Source: Octopus bimaculoides (Eukaryota). From it: 64,000 nucleotides of DNA. Each line of letters opens with the position of its first letter. The first letter of the stretch is position 1. The DNA is taken from contig NC_068983.1 in assembly GCF_001194135.2 (NCBI RefSeq), forward strand, positions 72,980,811-73,044,810, in the 5' to 3' direction. The position numbers and the translations under genes are program-made. This document shows positions 5,741 through 48,649 of the stretch, piece by piece. The notes beneath the pieces were generated by a model. The model was not told the origin of the DNA. It was given only the letters and a program-made list of their open reading frames with translations, and did not search any database.

Positions 5741-6505
5741 TTATCTATCTGTACAGCTTGTAAAGTTCACCTGTATTCTGTATGAATGCTTCAAACAGAT
5801 CCTTGTACGTATACCTCCACATATATTCACACAGATGGCTGGTGAGGTTTGCATGTGCGTCTCACTCATTTCGCGATTGATCTGCCACCATAGATTCTCA
5901 ATGTTGTTCATGTGAGCTCCGGTGAGAGAATCCACAAAGTTATAGCTGTTGTTGACAGTGAGATGCTGGAAATGAGAAGCTTCAAGACTATCGTATAATT
6001 GGTTCCAGTGTGGGCCTATCCCACTTGTTATTTGGCAATGCAACAAGAAAAGTTTCCCAAGTTTCACGGTATATTCCTCTAAACACCAACTGTCCTTCCA
6101 CAAATTTCCTGTGATTGTACTTTGTTTTGTTAAATTTCGATTCGTCGATTTCAACTATAAGTCCAGGGCCTCCAATGGGTTAGTCCGTGTGCAGTTTTGT
6201 CTCCACTGACCACTGACCGCTGATGAAATGCTTGTTTCGTGCCCAGTTTGCTTATACAGCAACTTATGAATAAAACAGTTAACCAATAGCAAACTCTTTC
6301 GAAGAGACAAATTGCTATGTCCAAACCAAGTTCCTTTATGAAGTGGTATTTGGTTCTTCACTTTCTCTTTACAAGTTCTCTTGTTGCATTGAAACCTTCG
6401 CTTTGCATGAGATCTTCTGGCATGCTTCACTTTGTAGATTTTGTTCAGTTTGATTTTATAAGATGGGCAACACATTTCTTTGGCTATGAGTTCAAGTTCT
6501 TTCTA
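5741..6505 (-). mobile_element. Merlin/ISXO2 (IS1595-like) DDE transposase remnant
   Basis: FQCNKRTC...KGTWFGHSNLSLRKSLLL N-terminal region, EIDESKFNKTKYNHR (first catalytic D, ~6110-6155) and HFQHLTVNNSYNFVDSLTGAHMNNIENLW, all typical of ISXO2/Merlin transposases. Frameshifted. Confidence 0.85.
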
Positions 6506-7411
6506 CTACATGCACAAGGCTTAAATTTTGGGAGGAGGTAACTAATCTATTACATCGACCTCAATGCNNNNNNNNNNGGTTCTTCACTTTCTCTTTACAA
6601 GTTCTCTTGTTGCATTGAAACCTTCGCTTTGCATGAGATCTTCTGGCATGCTTCACTTTGTAGATTTTGTTCAGTTTGATTTTATAAGATGGGCAACACA
6701 TTTCTTTGGCTATGAGTTCAAGTTCTTTCTACTACATGCACAAGGCTTAAATTTTGGGAGGAGGTAACTAATCTATTACATCGACCTCAATGCTCATCTG
6801 GTACTTATTTTATTGACCTGGAACAAATAAAATGCTAAGCCGACTTCGGTGGTATTTGAAATTGGAACATAAAGCTGGAAGCATTTTATCCGGTGTGTAA
6901 AAGATTCTGCCAGCCAGCTGTCTTGGAATTTCTATTGATACAGATATCAGTTGTGAATTGGAACATAGAGTAATTATGGAAAGAGAGTTAAATGAAATAT
7001 GACGGAAAAGAGCGGACGAAAAGCAATGATACAAGAGAAGGGCAAGTGGCAACGTTAAGTTGTGAAAGAAGAGAAAGAAATGAATTGAAAAGAGAGAAGA
7101 GGAAAACAGAGGTGCATATGAAAAGAGGGACGTGTTTAGATGCATAAGAGAGGAGAAAGAAATGAAATGACGAGAGATCAGAGATGTGTAAGAAAAGGGC
7201 GAAGAGCAAAAATGTGTACAATGAGGAGAGGTGATGCTAAAGAAGAAGAGATGGAAATGGAGAGAAAAAGACGTGGAGAAGCAAATAAATAATTAAATGA
7301 AAATGTTTAAAAAGAGAGGCAATGGTAGAGATGTGAAAAAGTGAGATGAAGAAGAAGCATAGAAGCAAAAAGATGAGAGAAAGGGATGGAAGAAGGAAGA
7401 TGTGGAAAGGT

Positions 7412-7918: not shown

Positions 7919-7919
<1 letters not shown>

Positions 7920-7984
<65 letters not shown>

Positions 7985-8030
7985 TACATACATACATACA
8001 TACATACATACATACATACATACATACACA
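7920..8030. repeat. (CA)n/(CATA)n compound microsatellite
   Basis: Direct. Confidence 0.95.
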
Positions 8031-10261: not shown

Positions 10262-10650
10262 AAATAAAATATGGTCCGTTGTCTTCTGCTGAACCGGGGT
10301 CATCCCTTGACCCTAGGGTCACAGCAGGTCCTCATCTCATGGAGAGTACACGGCGTAAAATGTGTCCGGAACCTAGCAACACTATTTTCTGAAATTCTCC
10401 CACGTTAACACTACAAGGGAGTTTGTTGAGTTGCTTATCAAGGCCCTTTTTAATTAGCCCTAACGCTCCAATGCACCACTGGTGCTGTGATGCTTTTCAT
10501 TCCCCACATCTTGGTCACTTCTATTTCTAGGTCTTTGTACATAAATAACTTTTCAACTTCTTTAATGGACGCATTTCTCTCTGGTGGTACTGTCAGATCT
10601 ATCATTAAGCATTTCTTATTCTTCCCATCTTTGATGATTATGTCCGGCCT
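10262..10650 (-). mobile_element. R4/Dong-like non-LTR retrotransposon 3' end (RLE domain)
   Basis: Reverse strand reads RPDIIIKDGKNKKCLMIDLTVPPERNASIKEVEK...W...(frameshift)IGALG...QKIVLLGSGHILRRVLS, the PD-(D/E)xK restriction-like endonuclease C-terminus. Followed by a (TAA)n tail. Confidence 0.85.
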
Positions 10651-10711
<61 letters not shown>

Positions 10712-10735
10712 TATTATTATTAGTGTTGTTGTTGT

Positions 10736-10917
10736 GGTGAGCTGGCAAAACCGTTAACACGCCGGGCAAAATGCTTAACGACATTTCGTCCGTCTTGAGT
10801 AAAATTCCGCCGAGGTCTACTTTGCCTTTCATCCTTTTGAGATTGATAAAATAAGTACCAGTGGTCGATGTAATAGATTTACACCCTCCCCTGAAATTGC
10901 TGGCCTTGTGTTTTGAA

Positions 10918-10920
<3 letters not shown>
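10736..10920 (+). mobile_element. tRNA-derived SINE (family C) flanked by (ATT)n
   Basis: Same head and body as 10016-10225, with an internal deletion. Confidence 0.8.
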
Positions 10921-10960
<40 letters not shown>

Positions 10961-11049
10961 GAGACAACGGAGTAAAGACCACAGTGTCAGATTAATTGAC
11001 TTACAAATGTTTAGTTACGTTTCGAGAATCTTCTTTGCTACATCCACTA

Positions 11050-11760: not shown

Positions 11761-12095
11761 TGCTAAGGTCAGATGTCAAGAATTCGCGAAGTTCAGCTTT
11801 TTATTTTAGATAAAACTTTGTTTTTGGTATTTAGACCAAGAGCAGCCCTGATGAAGCATAAATATCAAAAGTGATCCGACATTAATTAACCTGTCTTTTC
11901 CTTTGTTTTCTAGTGTATTCCTTTTTTATAATCAGTGCGGTATGATTCTAGGGACGATGCATACTGTCTTACAAATTTGTAGTTTTGAATGTTGAAAATA
12001 TTTATTTTAATTATATGAGGACAGAGTGTATATTATCATCTCCTGTGTTTCATTTTTTTTTTCTTTTTTTTTTTTCACTTCAGACCTTGTAGAGG

Positions 12096-15000
12096 ATGAG
12101 GGCCTCTATACCAATATTTTCTTCGATCTGCTGCTATTTCCTGTTTCTACATGGATGCCACAGTGAACATGTTCTTAGTAGGAATGCACGTGAGCTACCA
12201 GGTGGAACTGAACATGATTATTCACCAGGGAAGACAGCTGCTAAGACAGATAACATTGTCCAAACGACTTCACCGAGTGCTACTCCGTCCAGTACAACTA
12301 AATGTCCCAATCTAGATTCAAATGATCTCGCAAACAACGGCCATAGAATTATGAAAAGGAACAACATGCAGCGGTCTAGTTTTGAGGCTTCACATGAAAA
12401 ACGTAGAGTTATCAAAAGAACTGCAAATAGCTGTGTTGTTGCCCAAAGATCGCGTCATGAGTTATCTACCAGACGTACCGACAACAATGGGAGAAACACA
12501 ATGCGCACTTCAACGTCTAGAACATTCAGCCGAGAAAATATTAGAAACAACAGAATAAGTAACCGAAGACAAAACTCCGGGGCAACTTTAGAAACACGAC
12601 GTTCCGCAGCTGAAAATGTGCAGAAACTGTCATCAAGAAGGAGTATTGATTCTAGCAGGTCATTGCAAGAAAACACAAGACAACAAACATATAACACCCG
12701 CCGAAACTCACTAACACGCGATGTTTCTAGAACACGAAGATCAAGAGCTGTTGACAACATCAGTAGAACTCAAGAAATCCGCAAAGAAATCTCAAATACA
12801 AGACAACAAGCAGATAACACTCGCCGAAATTCACTGACACGTGACCGTTCTGTAGTTCCCAGTACACGAAGATCTAGAGATGTTGATAGCAGCCAGAAAA
12901 TACGAGAAGTTCGTAATGTGGTATCAGATACGAGACGACATGCAGATGACACTCGCCGAAATTCACTGACAGTAAGTTCGAGAAGACAAAGATCCAGATC
13001 TGTTGACGCTAGAAGGAGAGTACAGGATACTGGCAAAGAGAACTCAGATATAATACGAAAGCCTGATAACACGCGCAGGGATTCTCTTACACGCGAATCT
13101 TCAAGGGATTCTCGAATTCAAAGATCAAGATCTGTTGATACTACCAGAATGAGAACACAGGAAATTCGTAAAGAAGTATCGAATGCAAGACGGCAAACCG
13201 ATAACACGCGTAGAAACACTCTCAGGCGTGACTCTTCGGTAGTTTCTAGAACTGAACGCTCCAGATCTGTTGACGCTACAAGAAGAATGCGCGACGTTAA
13301 GAGAGAAGTATCAAAAACAAGGCAGGAAATGGATAGCACTCGCCGAAACATTCTTACTCGTGATACTCCAGACGCTTTTAGAAATCAAAGGTCCAGATCT
13401 CTTGGTTCCAGCAGGAGGACACAAGATATTCGTAAAGAGATACCAAATACCAGACGACAAGCAAACGACGTTTACCGAGTTTCCCAGACCCGCGACACTT
13501 CAGCTGTTTTCAGAACACGAAGGTCAAGATCGGTTGTGTCCAGTCGGAGAATTCAAGATGTTCGCAAAGACACAGACGCAAAACAACAAGGAGATAATTC
13601 ACGCAGAAACTCACTAGTTCATCATTCTTTAGTTGATTCTAGAACTCAAAGGTCAAGGTCGGTTGATTCTGTCAGAAGAACGCGGGAATTAAGTAAAGAA
13701 CTTTCGAACACAAGACGACAAACATATGACACTCGCCGGAATTCATTAACACGTGAGCCCTTAGTAGTCTCTAGAACTCGAAGAGCTAGAAGTACTGATT
13801 CCAGTCGGACAACACAAGACATTCGCAATGAAATATCGAACACAAGACGACAAACAGACAACAGGCGACGAAATTCACTGATGCGTGATCCTTCGGTAGA
13901 TTCCAGAAAACGAACATCTAGGGATACTGAAGTTAGCAGAAGAAGACGAGAAATTAGTCAAGAAATATTAAATACAAGACGACAAGTAGACGAAACTAGA
14001 CGAAATTCACTTAGTCGTGGCGCTCCATTAGTTTCTAGAACTGAAAGGTCCAGATCTGTTGATTCTAACAGAAGATCGAGGGAAATCGTTAATGAAATGA
14101 CAAGAACAAGACGACAGACAGACAATATTCGCAGAAACACTCTTACACGTGACAACTCAGACGTTTCTAGATCTCGAAGATCCCGATCTCTTGATTCCAG
14201 CTTGGTTCAAAATATTCGCACTGGGATATCAAATACGAGACGACAAATAGACAACAGTAGAAGACTTGCTGTAAGACAAGATACTTCAGTAGTTGCTAGA
14301 GTTCAAAGGTCCAGATCTGTTGATTCCAGCCGAAGAATACAGGAAACTCGCAGAGTGATGGCAAGTACAAGGCGAGATGTAGATAACACACGTAGGGATT
14401 CTCTTTCAGATGACACTTCGCTCGTTCGCAGCGTTAGGAAGTTCAGATCCGCAATATCAGAAACGCGCGATGGATCTTCCAATACTAGGCGTGTAATAGA
14501 TTCCACACAACGAAACTCGGCTGTTCGTGATAAAAAAGAATATATGTCTCGTTTAAGTGATTCTGAAAGAATGAGACACAGTAATCGCCGGAATGTGCAC
14601 ACTCGAGAATCTCGAAACGATAATGAAAACTGGAGATCCATTCCAATTAATTCCCACAAAAGATTAAGTCAAGCAAGAGTACCTGGAAATGTTCGTGAGG
14701 AAATGAGCAATACAAGGCGACACATAGACAGTGGCCGTCGAAACGTCTTACTTCGTGAATCTGGAGATGTTTCTAGAAACAAAAAGTCCAGATCTGTTGA
14801 TTTCAACAGAAAATCATGGCAAGAAAGGATAAAGTTTGAGGTTCGATACGTTAAATCAAATACCAGACGACGGGTAGATGACATGCATCAACCTTCCGTG
14901 GTAGGTGGAAAATCCAGGTCTACTGAATCTAACAGAAGGCAAGTTCGTACAGAAATATCTAATAGACGTCAAATAGACAACACACGTCGAAACAGTGCGG

Positions 15001-15794
15001 TTTATGAATCTCGTGATGTTTATAGAAGACAGACATCTAGATCCGTTGATTCTAACGTCATGTTACATCACACAAGACGGATACGAGACGTTCGTGAAGA
15101 TACTGGCAATACCATGCGTGAGATGCGACGTACCATTCGAGATAATTTGTCTTATGACCTCCCAAAAGCTTATAGGAACCAAAGAGCTATGTACAGGACA
15201 CGTCAACAAATTCGCGAGAAAATATCAGACACACGTCATCAAATTCATAATATTCGTCAAAATGCTAGAAGTGCTCCTCACTTCCAGCGATCAAGATTGA
15301 GTGATTTTAACAGTTTCAGAATTGCAAGAACTGTTAGCAACCAGGAAGTTAAAATATTTGGAAACTCGAAACAATTTTTAGTTTCTTCCTATCAAAACTT
15401 ACAGTTTGATATATCTTTCTTCCTGTCAAGAAACTTTGGAGCTATTGTTGTTATAAATCTAGAAAACAAACCATCATTTGTAACACAATCTTCAAACAAT
15501 TCTCTATCTAACTTGTTGCCTTCATTAACACCACCGAACCAAAAGGCTGAATGGAGCACTGCGATATCACTTGGAGTCCCAGTTGGCCTGCAAATGACAG
15601 ATAACGAATATTCTCGGCTGACGTTGCCATCATCTTTCGTCCTGTCTAGTGACAGAACAACACAGAAATATATAGGAAATAATGGCATTAATGAGGATTC
15701 AACTTTATTAATGAAAAACAATGTAAAGCAATCTAAACTGGAAACAAGTACAAGGTTTGTAAACTTGAATCTTATTTCGCTTATTACTGAATAA
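12096..15794 (+). CDS. Uncharacterised 1232-aa putatively secreted Arg/Ser-rich tandem-repeat protein
   Basis: 3.7-kb stop-free ORF in AT-rich DNA. Splice acceptor 12 nt upstream of the ATG. N-terminal hydrophobic segment MRASIPIFSSICCYFLFLHGCHS. About 14 clear plus about 4 degenerate ~44-aa repeats whose indels all preserve the frame. Non-repetitive C-terminus. Confidence 0.9.
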   Translation: MRASIPIFSSICCYFLFLHGCHSEHVLSRNARELPGGTEHDYSPGKTAAKTDNIVQTTSPSATPSSTTKCPNLDSNDLANNGHRIMKRNNMQRSSFEASHEKRRVIKRTANSCVVAQRSRHELSTRRTDNNGRNTMRTSTSRTFSRENIRNNRISNRRQNSGATLETRRSAAENVQKLSSRRSIDSSRSLQENTRQQTYNTRRNSLTRDVSRTRRSRAVDNISRTQEIRKEISNTRQQADNTRRNSLTRDRSVVPSTRRSRDVDSSQKIREVRNVVSDTRRHADDTRRNSLTVSSRRQRSRSVDARRRVQDTGKENSDIIRKPDNTRRDSLTRESSRDSRIQRSRSVDTTRMRTQEIRKEVSNARRQTDNTRRNTLRRDSSVVSRTERSRSVDATRRMRDVKREVSKTRQEMDSTRRNILTRDTPDAFRNQRSRSLGSSRRTQDIRKEIPNTRRQANDVYRVSQTRDTSAVFRTRRSRSVVSSRRIQDVRKDTDAKQQGDNSRRNSLVHHSLVDSRTQRSRSVDSVRRTRELSKELSNTRRQTYDTRRNSLTREPLVVSRTRRARSTDSSRTTQDIRNEISNTRRQTDNRRRNSLMRDPSVDSRKRTSRDTEVSRRRREISQEILNTRRQVDETRRNSLSRGAPLVSRTERSRSVDSNRRSREIVNEMTRTRRQTDNIRRNTLTRDNSDVSRSRRSRSLDSSLVQNIRTGISNTRRQIDNSRRLAVRQDTSVVARVQRSRSVDSSRRIQETRRVMASTRRDVDNTRRDSLSDDTSLVRSVRKFRSAISETRDGSSNTRRVIDSTQRNSAVRDKKEYMSRLSDSERMRHSNRRNVHTRESRNDNENWRSIPINSHKRLSQARVPGNVREEMSNTRRHIDSGRRNVLLRESGDVSRNKKSRSVDFNRKSWQERIKFEVRYVKSNTRRRVDDMHQPSVVGGKSRSTESNRRQVRTEISNRRQIDNTRRNSAVYESRDVYRRQTSRSVDSNVMLHHTRRIRDVREDTGNTMREMRRTIRDNLSYDLPKAYRNQRAMYRTRQQIREKISDTRHQIHNIRQNARSAPHFQRSRLSDFNSFRIARTVSNQEVKIFGNSKQFLVSSYQNLQFDISFFLSRNFGAIVVINLENKPSFVTQSSNNSLSNLLPSLTPPNQKAEWSTAISLGVPVGLQMTDNEYSRLTLPSSFVLSSDRTTQKYIGNNGINEDSTLLMKNNVKQSKLETSTRFVNLNLISLITE
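12690..15130 (+). repeat. Coding tandem repeat, period ~132 bp (39-45 codons)
   Basis: TRRNSL recurs with spacing 41,44,40,45,44,44,43,44,44,44,44,43,44,39 aa. Consensus approx. TRRNSLTRDxSxVSRTxRSRSVDSSRRxQEIRKEISNTRRQxDN. Confidence 0.95.
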
Positions 15795-16044: not shown

Positions 16045-16420
16045 GACGCGTGGCTATAAGGTAAAACGTTTGCTTCTCAACCACATGGGTCTAGGTTCAG
16101 TTTTCAGTCCCACTGCGTGGCACCTTCGGCAAATGTCTTCAGCTACAGACCTGCGTCGACCAAAGCCATGAGTGGATTTGGTGGACGGAAACTAAAAGAA
16201 GTCTGTCGTATGTGTATGTGTTTGTCCTCCACCACCTCTTGACAATAGGTGTTAGTTTGTTTATGTCCCCCAATAACTTAGCAGTTCGGCAAAAAAAGAT
16301 TGATCGAATAAGTACAAGACTTTAAAAAAATAATCGGTCGATTCATTCGACTAAAAAGACAAATTTTCAAGCCGATGCCCAGACTGCACAGTCAAATGAA
16401 TGAAACATGGAAAAGATTGA
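16045..16420 (+). mobile_element. SINE family A (CORE-type), diverged copy
   Basis: CCCACTGCGTGGCACCTT..GCAAATGTCTTC and GAGTGGATTTGGT..ACGGAAAC shared with 853-1450. Confidence 0.8.
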
Positions 16421-18918: not shown

Positions 18919-18985
18919 TGAAATCCTTTCAAAATCTGAAGCTGATACCAACCTATTTGATATACCCAGTATCTCAACTCTACAG
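18919..18985 (+). CDS. Small orphan gene, exon 3 (EILSKSEADTNLFDIPSISTLQ)
   Basis: ttttattttcag acceptor and CAG|GTAAGT donor. Open frame, phase 2 to 0. Confidence 0.7.
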
Positions 18986-20206: not shown

Positions 20207-20298
20207 ACTCAAATATCTCCTAAAGCTGCTGAAGAATCTTCAAATGATCAAACTTTCAGAAAGTATTTCTCAGACATCTTGGTAAATATAACAAACAG
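20207..20298 (+). CDS. Small orphan gene, exon 4 (TQISPKAAEESSNDQTFRKYFSDILVNITN)
   Basis: Pyrimidine tract plus CAG acceptor and AG|GTATGT donor. Open frame, phase 0 to 2. Confidence 0.7.
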
Positions 20299-21098
20299 GT
20301 ATGTCAACCATTTTAAACATATAACCAAATACTATAGTAGCAGATGTGGACACAGTATAACTGAATAGTTCAGAAGTTTGCTTCTTAATAAAGAGATACT
20401 GGGTTCAATCCTACTGTATGGCATCTTGGGCAAGTGTCTTTTACTGTAGCCATAAGTTGACCCAAGCCTTGAGAGGGATATTGAGTGAATGGAAACTGTG
20501 TAGAAGCCTATGCTTTGTCACACATCTCTTTCACAATGACTCTGACTGAGGATTACAATAAGAATACATGTGTTTGTGGAATACTCATTTAGCCTCAAGT
20601 CATCCCTAGTTGAGCAGACTTATGATCAAAGTACTCAAAATGTAAAGAGAGTAAGTAATCTCTTTACATTTTGAGTACTTAAGCAGGTGAAGGGAACTTG
20701 TCTATGTCTAACTGACAAGATGGTGTGTTTTTTAAAGACTCTCGAAGACATGCATGAGAGAAAAAAAAACCATTGTATTCTCCCATGAAAATCTCATGGC
20801 AAATACATAGGACTTGTCAAGGAAGTCACCAGATGTTGTTTGGTGACCTACAAGCACAGGTATGGGAGAAGAGACAGAGTAATATACAGTAAGAAGATGC
20901 CAGGTGGCAAAGTGGGATAAAAATATAAGGAAATAAATCAACTTCACCTTTCATCCTTCCACAACAGAACACTTTATCACCTTACTAGTCATATACATGG
21001 GATAGTTAAACCAACAATACTCTTCTCCCAATATGATTTAAATGTGAATTTTAAAAATCCATTGCTTTGTCATTTATTCATTTATTTTATTCAAACAG

Positions 21099-21231
21099 TT
21101 TCAAATGGCGCAAGGAAATGCCTAGAACCATTTTGATCAGTATGTTGGCACTAATAGGAATGAGAAGCAACAAAAACATCAACAAACCACTCAACAGACA
21201 ATTAACTTCGATTATGCCATCCATCTTCTAA
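21099..21231 (+). CDS. Small orphan gene, last exon (SFKWRKEMPRTILISMLALIGMRSNKNINKPLNRQLTSIMPSIF*)
   Basis: ttttattcaaacag acceptor. The phase-2 join gives a 44-codon open frame to TAA. AATAAA at ~21384. Confidence 0.65.
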
Positions 21232-21780
21232 AAGATGTGCTGACTTGTAAATCAAATGAACTGAAGACTACTAGACCAACTGACATTGATCCCAAAGGAA
21301 ATTGAACATTTACTTAATAATCTACCAATCTAGATGAACTGCTTTTTGAAATCAAATACCTAAAATGGCTATATTTATTCTTTAATAAATGCTTTAACTA
21401 CTTTATAGTGCTAACATCCAACAATGGCGCACCAAAATATCTTGAGAGATACTCTTGCAATATATGTACATGCATGAGTATAACATATAAAAACCGAAAG
21501 ATAAAGAAATAAAACCATATATATTTGCTTATATAAAACATATTCACATACTCACACATGTAACATGCATATTATAAATGCACACACATGTATGTATATA
21601 CATATTTGAAGAAACATATATATAATGTATGTGCTTCTTCACTTATGTATATATGCATATGCAACATACACATACAGTACAATGTCATCCATTTATATGG
21701 TAACTAGAGAGTACAAAATACAAACACACATCAAACATACATGCATGCTTTGTTATTCAAGGTATTAAAGAATATATATA

Positions 21781-22220: not shown

Positions 22221-22590
22221 TGTGTGGTAAGTAGCTTGCTTACCAACCACATGGTCTCGGGTTCAGTCCCACTGCATGGCATCTTGGGCAAGTGTCTTCT
22301 ACTATAGCCTCGGGCCGACCAAAACCTTGTGAGTGGATTTGGTAGACAGAAACTGAAAGAAGCCCGTCGTATATATGTATGTGTTTGTGTGTCTGTTTGT
22401 CCCCCCAACATCGCTTGACAACCGATGCTGGTGTGTTTATGTCCCCGTAACTTAGTGGTTCAGCAAAAGAGACCGATAGAATAAGTACTAGGCTTCTAAA
22501 GAATAAGTCCTGGCGTCGATTTGCTCGACTAAAGGTGGTGCTCCAGCATGGTCGCAGTCAAAAGACTGAAACAAGTAAAGAGTAAAAAGA
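22221..22590 (+). mobile_element. SINE family A (CORE-type)
   Basis: High identity to 853-1450 without the internal insertion. Confidence 0.9.
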
Positions 22591-23176: not shown

Positions 23177-24869
23177 TTAATGATGTAGGATTGTTTTGGC
23201 ATCTGAGCAAATGAACAACATGGTACACCAGTTGATTGATCTATAAGGTAAAAAAAAAGAGATGCAAACTACTAGTTATTTCCATGGAAACAGCTACTAC
23301 TGCTATTGTGGAGTAGGTGCACCACTGACTGGTGCCAATTGCTCTGGAAGTATATTCAGCTGTTGAGAAAAGAATGTGAATTTACCATTCACATCACTAG
23401 TACACCACAAATATACTAATATCAGATATTTGCTACAATTTGTTTTTTGTTTGTTTTTCTGAAGAATAACGTATGTCCTCAGAAAGAAGTTTCTATTGCC
23501 TCATAATATTAATTCACAAGCACTTCCCAATCATGTGATTTTGAGTTCAGTCCCACAGTGCAGCACCTTCAACAAGTGTCTTCTACAATAGCTCTGAGCT
23601 GCCCAATGAGTGGATATGATAGATGGAGACTGAAATAAGCCTGTTGCGTGTGTGTGTGCGCGTGTGTGCATATCAGTATGTTTGTTTACATTTGCACTTT
23701 TCCGAAAACCAATGAACGACAAGTAGAAATGTTGTGGTCATTTTCTCCTGTCAACATATACCTGCTGATTTCATACCTTTAAAGACATGCAGAATAAGTA
23801 GTCCCTGACTTGAAAGACAGGTAAGAGACAGCAACAAGAAGAGCATCAGGTTGTAAAAACAATGTCTTGATAATATATTTCTCTAGCCCATGTTGGCATT
23901 GAAAAATAGACATAAAACAAAGCTTATTCCTATTTTTTTAGAGTAACTGGAGATGTGTTTGGTCCAGTAGATGTGTAGTGTTAAGTTAGAGTAAAGACTG
24001 AAAACGAGTTGAGAAAGCAAAATTGTGAAAGCATTTATTTTATAAATAGAACTGACTACTTTGTGAAAGGATGATGAATTGTGATGGCGGAAAAGCACGT
24101 TCTTATTGATTAGCACTAGGACAGTTAAAGCAAACTAGAGATCAAAAAATATCTGATTCATGACCATCCTATCATTGTGTACTCCAAGACTACATTATTC
24201 AATGTACTTCCTTTTTTTTTTAAATGACAGGATGTGATATAAAGATTTAGTTTTATTTCTCATAGGTGAAGGTCCACAAAGTTCCTTTTTGTGACAAAAT
24301 TATAACCAGATGAGGTTTGAGAAGAAATAAGTAAATATCATCTGCGAACACTAGGTCCTACCAATGAAATGAAACAGAATCTAGGAGATATAGCTACTAC
24401 ATTATAGACCCATGTCAGCAGAGAAAAAAAAAATGTTCTTCTTCTTCTTGTGGTATTGATTATATTTCTTACAATACTGCTCTACCCACCCTTCTGGTTT
24501 TTAGAAAATGCAAAATATTGATAATTTTTTTGCTTTTGTTTATATTTTTCTTTTAATTCCTAGCTACATAGTTTCATTTTCAGTCCCACTGCAATGCACC
24601 TTTGGCAAATTTTACTATAGCCCTGGGGGTGACCAAAACCTTGTGAGTGGATTTGATACACAGAAACTAAAAGAAATTTATAGTATATATACATGTGCGT
24701 GTATTTGTGTACATCTTTTTCTTAGTATCACATGATGACTATAAGCAGGCATCACTAACATACAAGTGATATTCATTTCCAGTCTTCTTAGGAAAACATG
24801 TCTGACTATAGAAAGTGAAATATTACCTTGCCTGAAAGCAGGTGGGGTTAATGACAGCAAGAGATCTGA

Positions 24870-26704: not shown

Positions 26705-27066
26705 TCATTTAGTTTCTTTACGTTTAGATAGTTTCTTTTTTTTGTCTTCAAGATACACTTTAATTTCAGAGGGATCATGCTGCAGATATGGTCGCAAAGG
26801 ATAATTTGGTTCCTTTGGTTGATTAATAAAGAACTTAATCAGTTGCTTTAAAACATTGTCATTGAAATTCTGGATCTGACCATCTTTGATCTCATAAAGA
26901 TTTTCTTCTTCAGTGTGCCAACAGATGTTCTTCAGGTTGTTACCATCATCATCCTTCCACATCTCCAGTGTGTTAAGTTGGTAAGCAAAAAATGAGAACT
27001 TCTGTCCATCAGTGATCACTGTCTGGGTGGTAAGTGGATAAGTTAGCTCTACAAATGAGCTAAAAC
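26705..27066 (-). CDS. MRPS30: Mitoribosomal protein mL65 (MRPS30/PDCD9), exon 4 (last)
   Basis: TQTVITDGQKFSFFAYQLNTL...KNICW...LYE...FNDNVLKQLIKFFINQPKE matches human [21 protein letters not shown]...KNICW...FNDDVLLQIVHFLLNRPKE. CAG acceptor, phase 1, TGA stop. Confidence 0.95.
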
Positions 27067-27361
27067 CTGTAAGAAACAGGAAAAAATATAGTGTTAGAAC
27101 ATTCACAATGCACTTAAGATTATTTTATTTTGATTTCTGTCACTAGATTACAGCCATTCAGGGGCACTGATGACTTCAAAGGTTTTTAGTCAATTATATC
27201 GATCCTACTACATTGTCAGGTGTAGAACTTATTTTATCAATCTTATAATGTACAAAGAGTAAAGAAGTTAGCCTATGTTTAAACATAACCAAATATTACA
27301 AAGTATTGTTTAATGCGTCTAATCTGCCTGTTTTCAATCTTTCTCTCTGTGTGGTGTATAT

Positions 27362-35305: not shown

Positions 35306-36552
35306 ACTCAATGAGTGACTGAAAAAAAAATCTGCCCATCTTCTGGCCCAACGAAGTGTCGAAGAAGGAGCTGAGCCGCAAAACTGGTTACAATAATGTG
35401 GTCTTTGAAATATTGAGATCAACAGCAAAGATGGCTTGGCTATGCATTCAATATTAACCGAGGGGAAGATACCAAAGGTAGGATTAAAATGAACACAAGC
35501 TGGAAAGTGAAAGCTTGGTCGGTTGAAGAATACCTGACTTAGAACAGGTGAACGTGAACTGATATCAAAGTATTTTATATGGGACAATGCAGGCAACTAT
35601 TAAAGACAGGTCTGAATGACGCTTAATTGTAGAAGCATTGCTTCTCAACAGTGAAGGTAATAATATACAGCAAAATAACATTTACACGCATAAGCATTTT
35701 TCTCAGACAATGTTTATAGTGTTTTTTTTTGGTTTTTTTGTTTGTTTTTTATATGTAAGATATATACATGTGGGCCATGAGTTAATATAAGAAAACAAAA
35801 AAAAAATTAGTGGGCTACTGCAAAAAGTTGGTGATCCATGACGGGGTCACCGTAACATTATTTTAAGTTTCCGAGCAAAACAACGTATTGTAGCCCCTAT
35901 ATATACAACCATTACAGATTAGCATTTGGCATCCAGACCCATGAAGTCCCCGGGTAACTTCTGAGTATACCCTGCTTTATGATGGCACTGGCCTCTAAGT
36001 CTGTAAAATATGAACACAACGTCCCATATCACATCGTTCTGCAGACAGTAGAAAATGCCAGATTCAGAATTATTTCTTTGTATCCTTCTCTTGTAGTTTG
36101 TGATTAAATTTTAAAGGGGTGGAGGAATGACAAATATAAGTACCGGTAGTATAATGAGGCCTTTCGGTCAGCAAACATGATTGCATGTCTGATCAAGCAC
36201 CGCTAAGCAAACATACGATTAAAAGCATTCCAGCCGTGACATTCAGTTCTACTATTCAGATATAGTAGTGTATCTAGGACTATTTTATCGTGTGTCCTTC
36301 CTTTTTAAAGATGGTAGGGTGTAATTCGAAGTGAAATATGGCTGTTATTTCTTGCATTCTTACTGATATGCGTATAAAGGCGAGGGAAAATGGGGTGCAG
36401 AATATTTTTTAAAGTAAGTTATTTAAATGTAGTTATGTCTACACAGAGGTCATCGAAAGAAAGAGAAGGATAGCATGTAAAACAAGAATACACAAACAGT
36501 ATATGTGTTTGCGTGTAGGAAATAAAAGTATATATGTATTCTTTATACATAC

Positions 36553-37332
36553 CGGCATAAGAGGCTTTTCGGTGCGGATTTGAGAACAGATGAATTCTGT
36601 GTTAAAACGGCTGTACATTTTATGTAAAAACTGATCTTCCCTATTCATCCTTAATACGTAGGGCTTCATAGGAAAACCATAACGGTCCCAGAATGCCCGG
36701 ACTCGAACATTTTCTGCAAACTGGCTAGTCAATAGATAAGGGTAATCAGGAGCTAGAACCGAGAGCAAACAATTGATAATTTGTTCAGTTTGGAGAAATG
36801 TTACGTTACTAGGATCCATTTTATTGTATCTTGTATATTTTAAGTTTCTGTCAATAAGGAAATTTTCAAATAAAATAACCCTTTCAATTAACGGTTTTAT
36901 ACGCTGTAAATAAGCCATCGCCTCTTCTTCCATTTGTTCATAAACTTCAGGCATTCCAGGAGCCATGTGAGTTTTGGTCACGTATTGTTGATATTCAAAA
37001 GACCTGGGATAATGCTGAACTGAGGGACATTTCCAAGTAACTTCTGGAGATGGTGATAACATTTCGAAACGATCTTTTAGCTTCAACTGCGGGTCTTTTA
37101 ACTTGCTTGATTGTTCCCAGATTGACCAAGATCTCTTTTCGCTCATGTTACCCCATGATCCTGGCGGCCATCTCGGTTTGATTGGTGGATATTGAATTCC
37201 TTCGTCGGAAATTTCCTCTAAAGTATTTACTGATACAACACTACTAGCATAACGATTATTTGGGTGGAAAAAAGAGGAGAATCTAGAGCAAGATCGACAC
37301 GACCTCGAAAGCATGAGTGATGGCATCGCCAT
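36553..37332 (-). CDS. MRPS30: mL65/MRPS30 exon 1
   Basis: ATG at 37332 starts an Arg/Ser-rich, acid-free presequence-like N-terminus. YPPI and YQQYVTKT match human YPPI and YQYFTKT. Donor CCG|GTATGT. Spliced CDS is 780+112+168+362=1422 nt = 473 aa + stop. Confidence 0.9.
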
Positions 37333-37974
37333 TTTGACATTGAAAAAATATTTCAAGGGACGTAACTCTAAAACACTTTATCTTGTGTTAAAAACGTGAG
37401 AAATTGGTGCTTGGAATTATTCAATTTGATGCCTTGTGGTTTTAACTCCATATCACACCGGAGTTAATTTACTTTCTAATACTTCTAATATTTAAAAGAG
37501 TCAAGTATATAGTCGTAACCAATATTTAGAGCCAACTGGATACCAACAAAATACATGTTAGCACAGTTTTAGAGCGTAATCTGCCCGTGAATTTCAAGAA
37601 TTGGAAAGAAAATTGGGACAAAATGATTAGTGTAGATATAAAAATCATAGCTTTTACTAAAGCCTTCGACACTGTATCATTTAGGAAACTTATATACAGA
37701 TGTAAAACAATAGAATCAACATTAGAACTCAAGAATGAATAGGGGCCTGATTGAATGTAAGAATGATACAATGGCAGTAAACAATAGAGTGAATTACACT
37801 TGAGCCTGTGATGTTTGGCTGGTGTCTGTCATTCAAATAGAACTTACAAAAGTCAAATTTCAAGACCTCAAGTTTTGTGAGGCTTAGTCAATTAGGTATT
37901 TTGTTGCTCACCAGAATGGGGGTAATGGATGAAGTGGGTACCAATAATATATTGAAATGGAGTGGGGGTGTAGT

Positions 37975-40440: not shown

Positions 40441-43400
40441 AGCCCATCATTTATGTGTGGATATAAGTGTGTGCACGTATGTTTCTGTTTATCTCCCACA
40501 CACTATATGACAACCAGTGTTGGTTTGTTTATGTCCTTATAACAGAACAGTTTGGCAAAAGAGACCAATAGAATAAATCCTAGATTTAAAAGTACTAGGA
40601 GTGTTGGTCTACTAAACTCATCAATGTAGTGCTCAATCATGGCCACATTCCAATAAAAGTTAAAATGGTAAAAGGTATCTGAAAACTAATAGAGACAATC
40701 AGTAACAACCTCTATTTTCTTTACCACTTAGTTTTTTTCCTCTGTTTCTCAGCAACCATCTATATTTCTGTAGACTCAGAACAACTGGAGATCTGTTTGT
40801 GTATGTAATTCATCAGTGTTTAATCATCGAGAACTTCAACAAATGTTTTTATGGTTACCTGCAACAAAATTTTTGTATATAACATAAGAACCTCATAGCT
40901 ATGTTGTAGATTATACACCTATTATTAAAGGAATTCCAGTCGTGACTATCTTATCTTTTCCCTATGTGCAAGAAACTCAGGTACACATTATCCGACATGT
41001 CCATTTTTAGGAAAAGAGGTTATGTGAAATTTGGCTACTATTTCTAGCAAACTGAGCAACCACATTACACCGCCTTCCATAGCTTTGTTGCATGTATGGG
41101 GACTATATTCAACATGAGAACCTCATAGTTATGTTGCCAGCCATGAGAGAGTCCTGTCAGACTGCACCAATGGCAAGCACTTATTCACCAACCCACTCCA
41201 ACCTCTAGCCATGTTTCTTCCATCTGCCTTTGTTCCTCAAAGTTAGCTTATTGTATAACACCTCCATCTGACATAGTTTCAAGGGACTTATGCTGACTTG
41301 TATCCTCAATTCTTCATCTCTTTGGGGAATTTATTAAATAAGTGGCAGTAACTTAGATAAATTCTGTAAGTCCTTCTGTTGTATACTAAAATAGATCCTG
41401 AAACAGATCCCATACAATACATCTGTAAAAACTTCTTACTAAAATATACATGCAATAATTTATTATTTTTTTTATTATGGATAATGTGGCAAATATACAC
41501 AAATATGACAGGATGAAATACTTTACATCACAGAAATACTAGATCAGGGGGGTTTTTTTTTGTTTTTTTTATATATTTGCTGGGTTAGGGGGAAAAGGCC
41601 AGTGACAAAGGCCTTTGCAAGCCCCTTCCCTTAGATCAGTGAGACTGATGCCAGTGAATGTTTCTAATTAACCTTTCCAAATCAACACCTACAGAAAAGA
41701 CATGAACAGGGACAAAACACCAGAGGGCTGATGTTCTAAAAAAGAGAGACTGGTTGCAGTGATTACTGTGGAGCCAGATGGGTAATGAGAGGAGGAGAGA
41801 GAAATGTGCTGGAAATGCCCAAGTGGAGATAACATGAGCCTAGCAGCTATTTAATTAATAAATTAGCAGGTTATTAAATTTAATCAAATTAAGCAGAAGC
41901 TATTAGATTAATCTGGAATTCCACAATACTAAGCAATAATAATTACATGCATCCACAACTTCATTCTTCCGATTCAATAATACACAATATATATATATAA
42001 AACTGCTAAAAACGTTTTCACTATTTTTCTCTCCTGTTTTCTTGCTTGTTTTTTTCCATTGTCCATATTTGCTATGTCAGAAACTAAGAATTTTAGATTT
42101 TTTCTTTAGTAAATTTAAACCGAATAAACATCAAAATTTTTTTTTAGCAAGATACTATAAAGGTCCATATATAATACACCTGATTTTCAGTCCCAAATCA
42201 TTTTAAACCCATAACATCAGGTAGTGTTGCACACATGCAGATAATCTGCTATAATCTATACTAATAAGACAATAGGCACAGGTATATCTGTGTGTGTAGT
42301 CAAGAAGTTCACTTCCCAATCGCATGGCTTTGGCTTCAGTTCCACTGTGTGGTACCTTGGACAAGAATCTTTTACTAAAGCTCTGAGTCTTGTGAGTGGA
42401 TTTGGTAGATGGAAGCTAAAACATTTGCCATATATGCTTGTTTGTGTGCATTATGCTTATTTTTGCATTGTGTGATAATTGTAAATGTTGCAGTCATACA
42501 AGTGCCATCATTCATTTCCAATCTTTCATGAAAACATGTCCAGTCATGGGAAATATTATCTCATTTGGAAACACGTGCAGATTGGTGACAGGAAGGGCAT
42601 CCAGCCATAGAAAATCTGCCTCAACAAATTTCATCCGATCCATGCAAGCACAAAAAAGTGAACATTAAAATGATGGCAATACTGATACACAATAAAGAGA
42701 ATTCTATGATTTTTCTTTTAACTAAATTCTACCAGTCTTGGATAAGTGCCTTCTCAGGCCAACCAAAGCTTTCTGAGTGAATTTGATAGATAGAAATTGA
42801 AAGATGTGTGTATGTATCACCATCATGATAGACATTCTTCTTTTCATGCCCACTTTTCTCTGCTTGCAGGGGTCAAACAGAATTTGCCAAAGCAGATTTT
42901 CTACAGTTCAAAGCTTTCCTCTTCCAAGCAAGGTAATAATTCCCCATGGTTAGACATGTTTTCACAGAAGATTGGAAATAAAGGACACTGCTTGTATAAT
43001 GTCATGCATGTGCATCTTGACATCATGTACTAATTGTAAACAAACATTATAGTCAGTGTGTTTGCAATTTTCCATAAAAGTATTCGACTTGGAAAATATT
43101 AACTTGCTTGGAAACAGAAAGAACATCTGGCCATACAAAATTTGCTTCAATGAATTTCATCTGATCTATGCAAGCATGGAAAGGTGGAGTTTTTTCATAT
43201 ATAACCCAGAACTGTTTAACATGTTACATGCTGGGTGTACTATGGGTTAGATAGAAGAAAAAAAAACCAAATCACAAAAATATAATAAAAATGTTTTCAT
43301 ACAAAGTCACATAACACAATTTCCATAAAATATAGGTGCAAGTATGCCTGTGTGTTAAGAAATTTATTTCCCAACATCTCGGGTTCAATTCCACTGCGTG

Positions 43401-45349
43401 ACACCTTGGGCAAGTCTCTTACTATAGCTCTGAGCTAAACAAAGCCTTGTGAGTGGAATCTGTAGATGGAAACTGAAAGAAGCTCATCATATATATTTGT
43501 GTGTGTGTTTGCACATGCTGCTGCTGTCTCCTTGCCTTAACAATGCAGGTAATGTCCTTACTTGGAAACATTGGAAATATGTGAGAGTTGGTGACAGGAA
43601 GAGCATCTGGTTGCAGAAAATCCACCTCAATAAATTCTGTTCAACTCATTCANNNNNNNNNNTATATATATATATATATATCAAGAGGTTAGCAGTTTGT
43701 ATCCTGTCATCAGCTTCACAGTCTGTGACCAGGGCATTTAATTTCCAAATGGTTTAGTCCATTAATAACTGTAAAATTGAAAGCTTGCTGTGAGTTTGGA
43801 AAAGGCAATGAGAAAACACTCCGACGTCACCTTTAGAATTACTGTATGATAACCAGTTCTTCAGTGATACTTCAAGACCCAACAGGGTAACATGATGATG
43901 CAGAAATAAAACTTCATTAATACTGGGATAAATATTACTTTTGATTATGTAATAGAATGGGAAGGGTACACATTAAACATTCCTCTATTTGTATTTTAAT
44001 TTCTTTCACAATTTAGATGCCATGGGGTCCAAAGTAACTAATGTCATAAAGATTGGATTCAAACTGGTTATATCTGCCCCTTAAAAGATACTGATATAGC
44101 ATAACTTCAATTTAAGACTATTGAGCAATATGGTTCCGCCACTCCAGAGTTTAAACAAAAAAAAAAACAAAAAAAAAACACATTTACATCACATAATAGT
44201 ATGAAACAAACAAGACACCTTTATAACTGACCATAATTTACTTCCATTACAGATCATCCTCAGTATTTAAGAATATGTATTGTAAAATTGTATTTTCATG
44301 TGTTTGTCACTACTTGGCACCAAGATAAAACACTGCCAGAAACAAAGAGAAATTAAGAAAAGGAAAGCTTTGTTACCAAGAGAAATGTGGAAAGCTGTCT
44401 TTTCATGGTTTTGGAATTAACGTAACAGATATGGAAGGAGTTGATATCTTGCTAGATTTCAGTATCATAAGAGGTGAAAAAAAATGAGAGAGAGAGAGAG
44501 AATCTGCCTGTAGGTTAAGACCACTGTGGGTAGGGCCATATAAACTCAATTTAAAATTAGAGTTTTCTTCAAATTTAGATAATAAAAAGGATATAATTAT
44601 CTCCTCCTTGTTTTAGATTGAAATTCTAATTAACATACACTTAGAAAATACAAGAAGTTTTCAGACACAAACTTTCTAGAATACCATTTGAAAGTTCAAG
44701 AATCTTATTAAATAGTTCAAAACAGAGAAATGAATAAATAAAAATAAATAAATACAACAGCTAAAATAATAAAAAAAATTTGTCTAGACTTTTCATCCAT
44801 TGGCTTTATTTTATCAGAAAGGTATATAGTATATTGGAAATTGCTAAGAATAAAAATGATAAAAATTCCATTTATCTGGTAATTATTTCAAATGTAACAA
44901 AAAAAAAAAAAAAAAANNNNNNNNNNNNNNNNNNNNNNNNNNNNNNNNNNNNNNNNNNNNNNNNNNNNNNNNNNNNNNNNNNNNNNNNNNNNNNNNNNNN
45001 NNNNNNNNNNNNNNNNNNNNNNNNNNNNNNNNNNNNNNNNNNNNNNNNNNNNNNNNNNNNNNNNNNNNNNNNNNNNNNNNNNNNNNNNNNNNNNNNNNNN
45101 NNNNNNNNNNNNNNNNNNNNNNNNNNNNNNNNNNNNNNNNNNNNNNNNNNNNNNNNNNNNNNNNNNNNNNNNNNNNNNNNNNNNNNNNNNNNNNNNNNNN
45201 NNNNNNNNNNNNNNNNNNNNNNNNNNNNNNNNNNNNNNNNNNNNNNATGAACTTTCATTTGTTAATTTAAAAAAAAAAAGATCAAAATAGACTTTACATT
45301 CACCCATTTACACTTGAATTCTCACATATTATTTCCTTGCAGTATATTT

Positions 45350-46952: not shown

Positions 46953-48606
46953 ATGTGTGTAACTTGATAGACAATATCTTTTTAAAAGCAAAACTTTAAA
47001 TAAAAATTTAAACCCCACAAAGGCATGCTGATGAAAAATAGATTCTGAAATGAGAAGATTATAATCAAGAAAAGGAAATCCATATCTGGTAAATAACTAG
47101 CTACTGGAATATATACAGAAGTGTTGCTATGAAAGCTGAATTCCCTACCTCACACTATACACACACAAAGAAAACCGATATTCACTGGAAAAACCATGTT
47201 GCCAGAAGAAAAAAAATATGAAATACAAAGAGTGAGATTAGTGAAGTAAGTGACATTCTATAACCTTTAGATTCAATGACAGTGTATGTTTTAGTAAACT
47301 AAGACATTGAAATGGAAAAATATTTCCTGCCTGTAATAGCCCACAAACTTATCAAAGCATAGCGTAGTATTGCAGTTAGTCTTCACAATGAACAAATTAT
47401 AGTTGCTTTAACGTATCTTAATGAACAGGCATACCAAAGAAATTCATTGAAAAACAGAACTGGGATTCTTCAGTGAAAAATTCAACTTAAAGTTTTTGCT
47501 TATTTTGTGATACAAAAACAAAAAGTACTCAATATCGCCTTTGTGTTAGAAGTGTGCAGAGTCTGAGATAGATTTATTCATATGTTTATTAGTTTGTTTT
47601 AGCCACCGCAACCAAGGCCACTCTGGAGCACCACCTTATATGAGATAAACACAATTACATTATTATACAAAACATAGTCTTTTATTCTATCAGCACTCAG
47701 CACTTTAGTCAACTGTACACATCACAGAGTTGAGAAGAAAAAGGAAATATATCATTTGATGTGTACAAGAAACCAAAACACTGGCAATTGAACAAATATG
47801 TCTTGAATAATAATGTAATCTAGTTTATGTATGAATAAATACATATACACACACTGAGATGACGAAAGTAGATTCCATTTCAACTTGTTTAAATATCAAG
47901 GTTCTTAGAGTTATAAATTCTTGCTTAGAGTTTTAACTGGGTCAGTCAATGTAGACAAACTTTTCAAAGGAAAAGTTCAATAAACAATTTTAATAGCCTT
48001 ATAGTATCTAAAACAATACTGAGGAAGAAAATGAGTAAATAAATAAAATAGCTACAAATATACAAGTATATCAAACGGTCTATCAGAATAAAGGAAGTGA
48101 TATATGTGTGTGTGTAGACAGACAGACATAGGTGTGTGTGTGTATGGATAGATACACCCTTACAGATAGCTAGGCAGACAAACTGAAACTCAATCACAAA
48201 TAATGTAAGAAGTCAAATTTCAAAGAGAAAGTTATTCCTGTATTTTCATCAGAATTGACAACTAGACTGTTGGAAGAAAGAAGAAAAAGAAGAAGCAATG
48301 TATCTTATTTTGCATTTATACAGTCCATCAAGCATTAAAGAAGACAGACACAGAAAAATCACCTTTGATAAAATGCATTGTAAGTTTTGAAAATTATGTA
48401 CATTTTATATATGTGTGTATATATGTATACACATATATATATACATATCTGTATGTATATATGCATACACATATATACATATGTGTGTATGTATATATCT
48501 GTGTGTGTGTGTGTATACGTGTATGTATATATATATATATATATATATATTTATACATACACACATATGTACAGATAGAGACATCATATGCATATAGATG
48601 TGTGTA

Positions 48607-48649
<43 letters not shown>

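Follow-up and report, generated by a model that had tools for sequence, protein, structure and literature searches.

The question raised by this locus is whether an unusually long, arginine-rich open frame in the genome of Octopus bimaculoides belongs to a gene and, if so, what kind of protein that gene encodes. The frame lies in a 64,000-nucleotide (nt) stretch of contig NC_068983.1 (assembly GCF_001194135.2, positions 72,980,811 to 73,044,810), hereafter called the window, and all coordinates given below are positions in this 64-kb window and refer to its + strand unless marked (-). A preliminary description, made from the letters of the window, had proposed that the open reading frame (ORF) at 12096-15794 encodes a secreted tandem-repeat protein of 1232 amino acids (aa) that is extremely rich in arginine (Arg). 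The listing of ORFs in the window contains this frame at precisely these coordinates (12096..15794(+)) as a single open frame from ATG to TAA. As judged from its comparison with the argonaut octopod (paper nautilus) Argonauta hians, the ORF corresponds to the first, large coding exon of a gene in which four exons are coding; the predicted product of the gene has 1316 aa. The gene belongs solely to a two-member octopod family, the other member of which is uncharacterised. The predicted product begins with a signal-peptide-like segment, and its body is, as far as can be modelled, disordered, uniformly cationic and Arg-specific.

Evidence for a functional coding gene

The 1232-aa ORF is 3.5-fold longer than the next longest open frame in the window, and each of the remaining five frames over the same DNA contains 30-133 stops. 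Given the local frequency of stop trinucleotides, 1232 open codons would be expected by chance with a probability of ~1e-28 to 1e-31. The ORF is composed of 19.5% R, 14.5% S, 8.8% T, 8.0% N and 3.2% K. Its Arg-richness is not a simple-sequence or microsatellite artefact, because all six Arg codons are in use (AGA 98, CGA 43, CGT 34, AGG 32, CGC 23 and CGG 10).

When the ORF was used as a query against 5.8 billion protein clusters, the sole relative found was GAB1606502.1 of A. hians, a protein of 1129 aa that had been named automatically "serine/arginine repetitive matrix protein 2-like" (SRRM2-like). The match between the two sequences (E value 1e-151) covers 78% of the query at 42% identity and is collinear through the repeats. 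Mapping GAB1606502.1 back onto its own locus (L001) revealed four coding exons, and the Octopus gene has the same four, with the same intron phases and canonical splice sites. Also shared are a near-identical signal region and the 23 residues that follow it, a conserved C-terminal block and a conserved last exon. The two proteins differ in length (1129 aa in A. hians vs. 1316 aa in Octopus) and in the number of recognisable repeats (14 vs. 21); the A. hians protein is without the counterpart of Octopus aa ~85-230 and has an insert of its own near the C-terminal end of the array. The Octopus gene thus belongs to the octopod family of GAB1606502.1, as shown by similarity that is collinear over the full length, by a common exon layout and by an invariant N-terminal peptide. 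GAB1606502.1 is a true ortholog, and its SRRM2-like name is a compositional artefact of a composition-driven best match.

Comparison of the A. hians locus with the window by blastn revealed exon-shaped conserved islands amid diverged sequence, in which only the exons and the 3' untranslated region (UTR) stood out. These islands were found at 12038-12255 (the initial 160 nt of the ORF and 58 nt ahead of it, 82% identity), over the ORF body (65%), over 148 nt at 15358-15505 (75%), in the donor region at 15742-15782, at 20215-20328 and at 21077-21403 (73%). The ratio of nonsynonymous to synonymous divergence (dN/dS) was 0.39 for the whole alignment of 1077 aligned codons (dN 0.37, dS 0.95), with regional values of 0.19 for aa 1-50, 0.39 for the repeats and 0.30 for exons 2-4. 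Because a protein-guided alignment can flatter dN, substitutions between the two species were also counted by codon position in the frame-blind blastn alignments, in which the mismatch rates at positions 1, 2 and 3 were 0.254, 0.258 and 0.379, respectively. More than 3 kb has been kept open in both species at near-saturated synonymous divergence. On these sequence comparisons the locus reads as a functional coding gene that is evolving fairly fast, and we regard it as almost certain that the ORF is real coding sequence of a selectively maintained gene.

Structure of the gene

The preliminary description had taken the ORF as the whole protein, which proved incorrect. Coding exon 1 spans 12096..15754, encodes aa 1-1219 plus 2 nt of the next codon and ends at a donor, AG|GTTTGT at 15754/15755, that is the same in A. 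hians. The last 13 codons of the ORF and its stop (15755..15794, FVNLNLISLITE in translation) lie past this conserved GT donor and are therefore intron read-through. Coding exon 2 is probably 18919..18985 (67 nt; product ..EILSKSEADTNLFDIPSISTLQ), which is bordered by AG and GT and, of the segments compared, best matches the 61-nt exon 2 of A. hians at both the nucleotide and the peptide level. The similarity is weak, and this segment was the sole solution found that keeps the frame from exon 1 to exon 3; the exon, placed by weak similarity plus frame logic, is probably the weakest piece of the gene model. Coding exon 3 (20207..20298, 92 nt) was identified by tblastn and blastn matches to exon 3 of A. 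hians, and its frame was checked. Coding exon 4 (21099..21231), which ends with TAA, encodes FKWRKEMPRTILISMLALIGMRSNKNINKPLNRQLTSIMPSIF, 62-65% identical to aa 1085-1129 of the A. hians protein, and is followed by a 3' UTR (21232..21410) with AATAAA at 21384-21389 and a putative poly(A) site. Every intron border is AG/GT, and the intron phases agree with those of A. hians. The spliced C-terminus would thus comprise 97 residues beyond exon 1, ending ...EMPRTILISMLALIGMRSNKNINKPLNRQLTSIMPSIF. Of the C-terminus as first described, the mildly hydrophobic FLVSSYQNLQFD...VVINLEN block is present and conserved, whereas the final 13 aa belong to the intron and the real end lies downstream.

Upstream of the ATG, the segment 12038..12095 comprises a putative intron end and a short 5' leader, with a long polypyrimidine tract; a CAG whose last base is 12082 and a TAG whose last base is 12092 are candidate acceptors. 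In Octopus the TAG at 12090-12092 is in frame with the ATG, which has an A at -3. The polypyrimidine tract, the CAG that ends at 12082 and the in-frame TAG together make an upstream non-coding exon likely. It should be noted that A. hians has an extra in-frame ATG four codons upstream of its annotated start (ATG TTG CAG AAG ATG, L001 9989-10003), and that the matching position in Octopus carries an in-frame TAG. Analysis of the 10-12 kb upstream in both species by tblastx found only microsatellites and a transposable element (TE) fragment, and no conserved coding exon.

N-terminus and C-terminal module

In the N-terminus, MRASIPIFSSICCYFLFLHGCHS, the residues MR form an n-region, IPIFSSICCYFLFL an h-region of 14 residues and HGCHS a c-region in which the small residues C and S occupy -3 and -1, respectively. 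Besides aa ~1102-1106, the segment aa 1-23 (12096..12164) contains the sole 19-residue window of the protein with a Kyte-Doolittle mean above 1. The segment, which is conserved in A. hians, appears to have the anatomy of a cleavable signal peptide. This reading of the n-, h- and c-regions, which was made by hand, agrees with the signal peptide proposed in the preliminary description, and both the hydrophobic N-terminus ending LHGCHS and the Thr/Ser-rich linker reported there are present. With its hydrophobic core of 14 residues, the segment is too short for a membrane anchor, and the hydropathy analysis found no further transmembrane-length segment in the protein. The in-frame TAG close upstream of the ATG in Octopus also speaks for entry of the product into the secretory pathway, which we consider to be likely. 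Three of the five Cys in the ORF are located within the N-terminal hydrophobic segment; the other two, C70 (KCPN) and C113 (NSCV), are the two post-signal Cys that had been pointed out before (CPN and SCV), and neither is conserved in A. hians.

The predicted mature chain starts with an invariant peptide, EHVLSRNARELPGGTEHDYSPGK (aa 24-46, 12165..12233). Over codons 19-46 (HGCHS|EHVLSRNARELPGGTEHDYSPGK; H19-K46), 0 nonsynonymous and 5 synonymous differences were found between the two species, and by this comparison codons 19-46 are by far the most constrained stretch of the protein. RNAR and GK border the invariant peptide, in which Asp beside Tyr forms a sulfation-like context.

Beyond the array lies a conserved non-repeat block, GNSKQFLVSSYQNLQFD...VVINLENKPSFVTQSSNNSL (aa 1086-1137, 15351..15506), whose DNA is 75% identical to that of A. 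hians over 15358-15505. The FLVSSYQNLQFD...VVINLEN block is among the best-conserved parts of the protein, and AlphaFold gave no confident fold in the aa 1086-1137 block. The last exon encodes a conserved 12-residue hydrophobic stretch that is predicted to be a helix and is followed by 25 polar residues. A stretch of 12 residues followed by 25 polar ones is neither a transmembrane helix nor a glycosylphosphatidylinositol (GPI) signal.

Repeat array and bulk properties of the product

A hidden Markov model (HMM) that was built from five units and iterated on the protein identified ~21 diverged copies of a ~44-aa unit at aa 193-1075 (12672..15320), with the consensus EISNTRRQIDNTRRNSLTRDSSVVSRNRRSRSVDSSRRTQ. 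Because the copies are just 64-68% identical at the DNA level, as measured in self-matches, no ~132-bp array was reported by Tandem Repeats Finder. The well-formed repeats (aa 193-990) contain 23.8% R and 2.8% K, which agrees well with the earlier account of ~44-aa repeats that are about one quarter Arg and poor in Lys. The best-conserved columns of the repeat are the Arg in RRN and RSRS. The enriched motif is TRR, which occurs 27 times vs. 4.2 expected from composition.

The repeats of the two species are positionally orthologous (W2→A1, W3→A2 ... W12→A11, W17→A13). Orthologous units are 50-60% identical and thus no more similar than paralogous units (50-65%), which indicates that the array is older than the Octopus-Argonauta split and has been held near its consensus. 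Of all residue types, Arg is the best conserved between the orthologs (69%), and Lys makes up only 16 of its 108 replacements, though AGA/AGG to AAA/AAG is one transition in an AT-rich genome. With fixed acidic positions in the repeat conserved as well, the selected property appears to be the patterned guanidinium group, not charge alone. The array is not mucin-like, with Pro at 1.9% overall, 12 Pro among 883 repeat residues and 4 N-x-S/T sequons.

The predicted mature protein has a mass of ~151 kDa, an isoelectric point (pI) of 11.7 and a net charge of ~+144, and its charge per 44 residues is uniformly +5 to +9 in both species. An AlphaFold2 model of the A. hians ortholog, computed from a two-sequence alignment, had a mean predicted local distance difference test (pLDDT) score of 38, in which some repeats were modelled as long helices of low confidence and the C-terminus as a small three-helix module at pLDDT ~53. 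The polycation foreseen in the preliminary description is thus borne out by the calculated charge, with the qualification that the predicted product is specifically an Arg polycation.

Distribution and annotation

With the A. hians protein as query, exhaustive phmmer scanning of 1.84 billion representatives recovered only that protein itself at E≤0.001. When the ORF, the ortholog and the spliced C-terminus were compared with Pfam at E≤10, nothing beyond a sub-threshold match to Preseq_ALAS (E 1.7) was obtained, and a sequence search of the PDB gave a chance match only (E 0.5). A profile search with the repeat returned no matches and likewise did not recover the known ortholog; it is thus uninformative and is not counted as a negative. 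In the literature consulted, which included the argonaut genome and eggcase-matrix papers, we found no mention of the protein, of the invariant peptide or of octopus Arg-rich secreted repeats. The preliminary description had called the protein an orphan and lineage-specific and had noted no resemblance to known families. It is lineage-restricted and without a known family, Pfam match or PDB match; it is not, however, a strict orphan, given its one ortholog in A. hians. The Pfam, self-match and homology searches found neither a known conserved family nor a TE-derived ORF.

The gene product was not found in the annotated proteomes of O. bimaculoides, O. sinensis and O. vulgaris in the searched collection. 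All three proteomes are in that collection, since the cluster of the neighbouring MRPS30 includes O. sinensis and O. vulgaris proteins, besides XP_014771764.1 of O. bimaculoides. The exact 1232-aa ORF is also not on record in the index of public assemblies, and the gene is unannotated in Octopus. Given that it was missed there, its absence from the proteomes of squid, cuttlefish and Nautilus would not mean absence from their genomes, and proteomic searches made against the existing annotations would be blind to its product. After digestion with trypsin, the predicted product would still yield 62 peptides of 7 aa or more.

The distribution of CpG dinucleotides changes sharply through the gene. 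Their observed/expected ratio is 0.9-1.26 at ~7-17.5 kb, a region that covers exon 1 and the sequence upstream of it (including the 5 kb before exon 1), 0.03-0.2 at 18-22 kb, where exons 2-4 are located, and 0.16-0.45 over MRPS30, a neighbouring housekeeping gene. This sharp boundary suggests a boundary of germline methylation. Among invertebrates whose gene bodies are methylated, a lack of CpG depletion is typical of tissue-specific genes that are unmethylated in the germline. The undepleted CpG at exon 1, together with the lack of a gene model in three annotations supported by RNA sequencing, hints that the gene is expressed in a restricted or inducible manner. Such expression is probable and would account for the lack of the gene in the three Octopus annotations.

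Possible function and alternative explanations

By kind, the product is inferred to be a lineage-specific, secreted, repetitive and disordered protein in an unusual, Arg-specific polycationic form. The reading that we favour, at somewhat less than an even chance, is that of a disordered, Arg-specific polycation of the secretory pathway that binds polyanions multivalently. The protein would enter the endoplasmic reticulum (ER) and the secretory pathway and lose its signal peptide, after which the mature, disordered polycation of ~151 kDa could bind polyanions multivalently through roughly 240 guanidinium groups. The polyanions bound could be sulfated or acidic glycans, nucleic acids, polyphosphate, acidic proteins or microbial surfaces, which would be condensed, cross-linked or gelled, or coated upon binding. 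Handles for sorting, docking or assembly might be provided by the helices at the C-terminus and by the invariant peptide at the N-terminus.

Several points weigh against this multivalent polycation. Its mechanism is inferred from composition alone, and the gene is a predicted one in both species. Asp or Glu is conserved at three or four fixed positions in each repeat, so that the unit is a patterned polyampholyte and not a plain polycation. The overall dN/dS of 0.39 indicates no more than moderate constraint. The A. hians model starts at an ATG without an annotated UTR and resembles an ab initio prediction. Finally, base-by-base comparison revealed that the AG of the TAG at 12090-12092, just before the ATG, is kept in A. 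hians. An upstream coding exon is therefore possible, and such an exon would make the hydrophobic segment internal.

A more specific and more doubtful version of the polycation reading, which we put forward tentatively, is an "extracellular protamine", i.e., an octopod-restricted, secreted Arg polycation of ~150 kDa that scaffolds a polyanion condensate or gel at the ionic strength of seawater. Such a protein could operate in a secretion that serves reproduction, adhesion or defence, and the strictly conserved 23-residue N-terminal peptide could be a distinct element for signalling or docking.

In molluscs, multi-copy peptide precursors are a common type of protein, and the product might alternatively be a polyprotein precursor, in which enzymes of the prohormone-convertase type cut at Arg-Arg sites once the signal is removed, dozens of short peptides are freed and the arginines are simply cleavage sites. 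The possible peptides would include QIDNT, NSLTRDxSVVSR, SRSVDSS and TQEIRKEISNT, plus an N-terminal peptide of the ELPGGTEHDYSP type after RNAR, and they could be neuropeptide-like, pheromone-like or antimicrobial. The layout is suggestive in that tandem units with three or four RR pairs apiece, always in the same places, would come after the signal peptide, and in that the invariant N-terminal peptide between RNAR and GK, with its Asp next to Tyr, could itself be a released peptide (RNAR|ELPGGTEHDYSP-GK). Several features of the sites and of the peptides between them speak against this reading, however. RR pairs are not enriched (52 vs. 45±5 expected from composition), and furin-type R-x-[KR]-R sites are depleted (6 vs. 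11.8±3.2 in shuffles). Lys practically never occupies P2 of the RR pairs, though KR is the commonest convertase site, the single Arg in RSRS is conserved as well as the pairs are, and no Gly precedes the basic pairs, so that an amidation signal is lacking. The would-be peptides, moreover, are ~50% identical between copies and between species and are without aromatic, hydrophobic or Cys residues. We thus regard the polyprotein as unlikely.

A still less likely explanation is that of an effector in saliva, venom or another secretion, the Arg repeats of which would carry it into target cells and nuclei, where it would disturb RNA or chromatin. In cell-penetrating peptides Arg is favoured over Lys, and Arg appears to be selected over Lys in this protein as well. 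A protein that joins a signal peptide to disordered repeats with numerous Arg clusters resembling nuclear localization signals (NLS) would fit such a role, and SP7-like fungal effectors show that such a design exists (PMC11333574). The size of the product, 150 kDa, is nevertheless far above that of known cell-penetrating agents. An abundant gland transcript, moreover, would probably have given rise to a gene model, and there is none in the three Octopus proteomes. The salivary-gland transcriptomes of octopuses are heavily sampled.

Arg-rich low-complexity regions are typically nuclear, and the name of the A. hians protein implies a nuclear protein with an arginine/serine (RS) domain, the hydrophobic N-terminus of which would not function as a signal. 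Both the Arg/Ser-rich composition, with its RSRS motifs and RRxS sites, and the automatic name given to GAB1606502.1 point in this direction. Against it, no cwf21, PWI, RRM or other Pfam domain was found at E≤10, and neither an SRRM nor an SR protein was recovered at E≤0.001 in the exhaustive phmmer search with the ortholog. RS dipeptides number 30 vs. 28.9±4.5 expected and SR dipeptides 40 vs. 28.7±4.2; as RS dipeptides are at compositional expectation, the "RS-like repeats" of the preliminary description were an overstatement. A conserved, hydrophobic and signal-like N-terminus with 0 nonsynonymous changes directly after it also speaks against a nuclear protein, which we consider improbable.

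A non-functional sequence, be it a frame open by chance, a pseudogene in decay or a segment that stems from a TE or a satellite, would accord with the repetitive, low-complexity sequence and with the lack of a gene model in three annotated Octopus genomes, but is highly improbable in view of a chance expectation of ~1e-28, an orthologous ORF that is intact over more than 3 kb at dS ~0.95 and dN/dS 0.39, an exon structure and splice phases shared with A. hians and interspersed repeats that sit in the introns and not in the exons. An origin from a TE was also considered and rejected, as the ORF has no TE domains and no second copy in the window and its self-matches are internal repeats only.

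Other features of the window

The neighbouring MRPS30 gene (PDCD9, PF07147) is encoded on the - strand, with its first coding exon within 36439-37356(-) and its last within 26708-27124(-). Its first exon is identical to O. bimaculoides XP_014771764.1 at 260/260 positions, as expected if the window is from O. bimaculoides or from a genome that does not differ from it at this site. MRPS30 is convergent with the Arg-rich gene, and the 3' ends of the two genes are ~5 kb apart. In A. hians, an MRPS30-like gene and the ortholog of the Arg-rich gene are apparently on separate contigs, so this adjacency may not be conserved.

Interspersed elements of ~110 bp that are 75-88% identical to sequences of the A. 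hians locus were found at 903-1013, 16114-16201, 22283-22367, 24622-24675 and 43380-43483, and also at 7919-8028 and 48450-48648. They lie in the introns and flanks of the gene and are octopod repeats that resemble short interspersed nuclear elements (SINE-like). Upstream of the gene, a short tblastx match to the A. hians upstream sequence (RPDI...KKC..., 10549-10650(-)) resembles a retroelement fragment; it is adjoined by an "ORF" of Ile and Asn runs at 10638-10982(-) that is the translation of a microsatellite. A 309-aa ORF at 56347-57276(-) contains a DDE_1 transposase domain (PF03184, E 1e-18) and is the remnant of a DNA transposon unrelated to the gene. Rfam and tRNA scans of the window were both empty.

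The window contains seven assembly gaps with a total of 2102 N (6568-6577, 43653-43662, 44917-45246, 49531-49626, 54396-54891, 60329-60909 and 63292-63870), none of which falls within the gene. The runs of N account for the six-frame "ORFs" at 44.8, 54.3, 60.2 and 63.3 kb. A perfect tandem duplication of 226 bp x 2.0 (6352-6793) lies across the 10-N gap at 6568-6577 and is probably an assembly artefact of the gap edge and not a true repeat.

Significance and comparison with known systems

Many novelties of cephalopods are built on secreted repeat proteins confined to particular lineages, among them reflectins, suckerins, beak proteins and octovafibrin. If the product of the Arg-rich gene is secreted, an Arg-specific polycation would represent a different chemistry that is suited to polyanions in high salt and of relevance to bio-adhesives, coacervates and antimicrobials. 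If it is both expressed and secreted, a large, conserved, octopod-specific protein has been overlooked by three genome annotations, and should the "extracellular protamine" prove true, it would add a new type to the proteins of marine biomaterials or of defence, one without homologs outside octopods. The case also shows that composition-driven naming ("SRRM2-like") can mask a novel family.

Among known systems, the SP7-like effectors of arbuscular mycorrhizal fungi combine a predicted signal peptide, predicted NLS, repeats and disorder and localise to condensates in host nuclei, so that a secreted protein with "nuclear-type" basic motifs is a known design (PMC11333574). They are from another kingdom, unrelated in sequence and far smaller, and their action in host nuclei has been demonstrated. 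SRRM2 and other RS splicing proteins are likewise Arg/Ser-rich, disordered and repetitive, whereas the octopod gene is without cwf21, PWI or RRM domains, RS enrichment or homology to them and has a signal-like N-terminus instead of a nuclear architecture. Multi-copy peptide precursors, such as molluscan neuropeptide precursors and insect genes for polypeptide antimicrobial peptides (AMP) like Baramicin and apidaecin, share the signal peptide and the tandem units bounded by basic residues; in the octopod protein, by contrast, the basic pairs are unenriched, KR sites and amidation Gly are lacking and the units are ~50% identical.

Protamine chemistry consists of Arg over Lys and of polyanion condensation, and the strong preference for Arg over Lys and the polyanion-condensing chemistry of protamines and other sperm nuclear basic proteins, including those of cephalopods, are the points of likeness to the octopod product. 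Protamines, however, are small (under ~100 aa) and nuclear, contain ~50% or more Arg and are without a signal peptide, while the octopod product is predicted to comprise 1316 aa with 19-24% Arg, conserved acidic positions and a signal-like N-terminus. Diatom silaffins, the polybasic proteins of sandcastle-worm cement and mammalian semenogelins are disordered, lineage-specific and fast-evolving proteins that assemble electrostatically with polyanions. Like the octopod protein, these biomaterial and gel proteins combine a signal peptide with basic tandem repeats; they differ in that there is no sequence relationship and in that they largely use Lys, His, Gly or modified residues. By analogy, and with no sequence relationship to any of these proteins, the way of working proposed for the octopod protein would most resemble that of such secreted polycationic biomaterial and gel proteins and, chemically, that of protamines.

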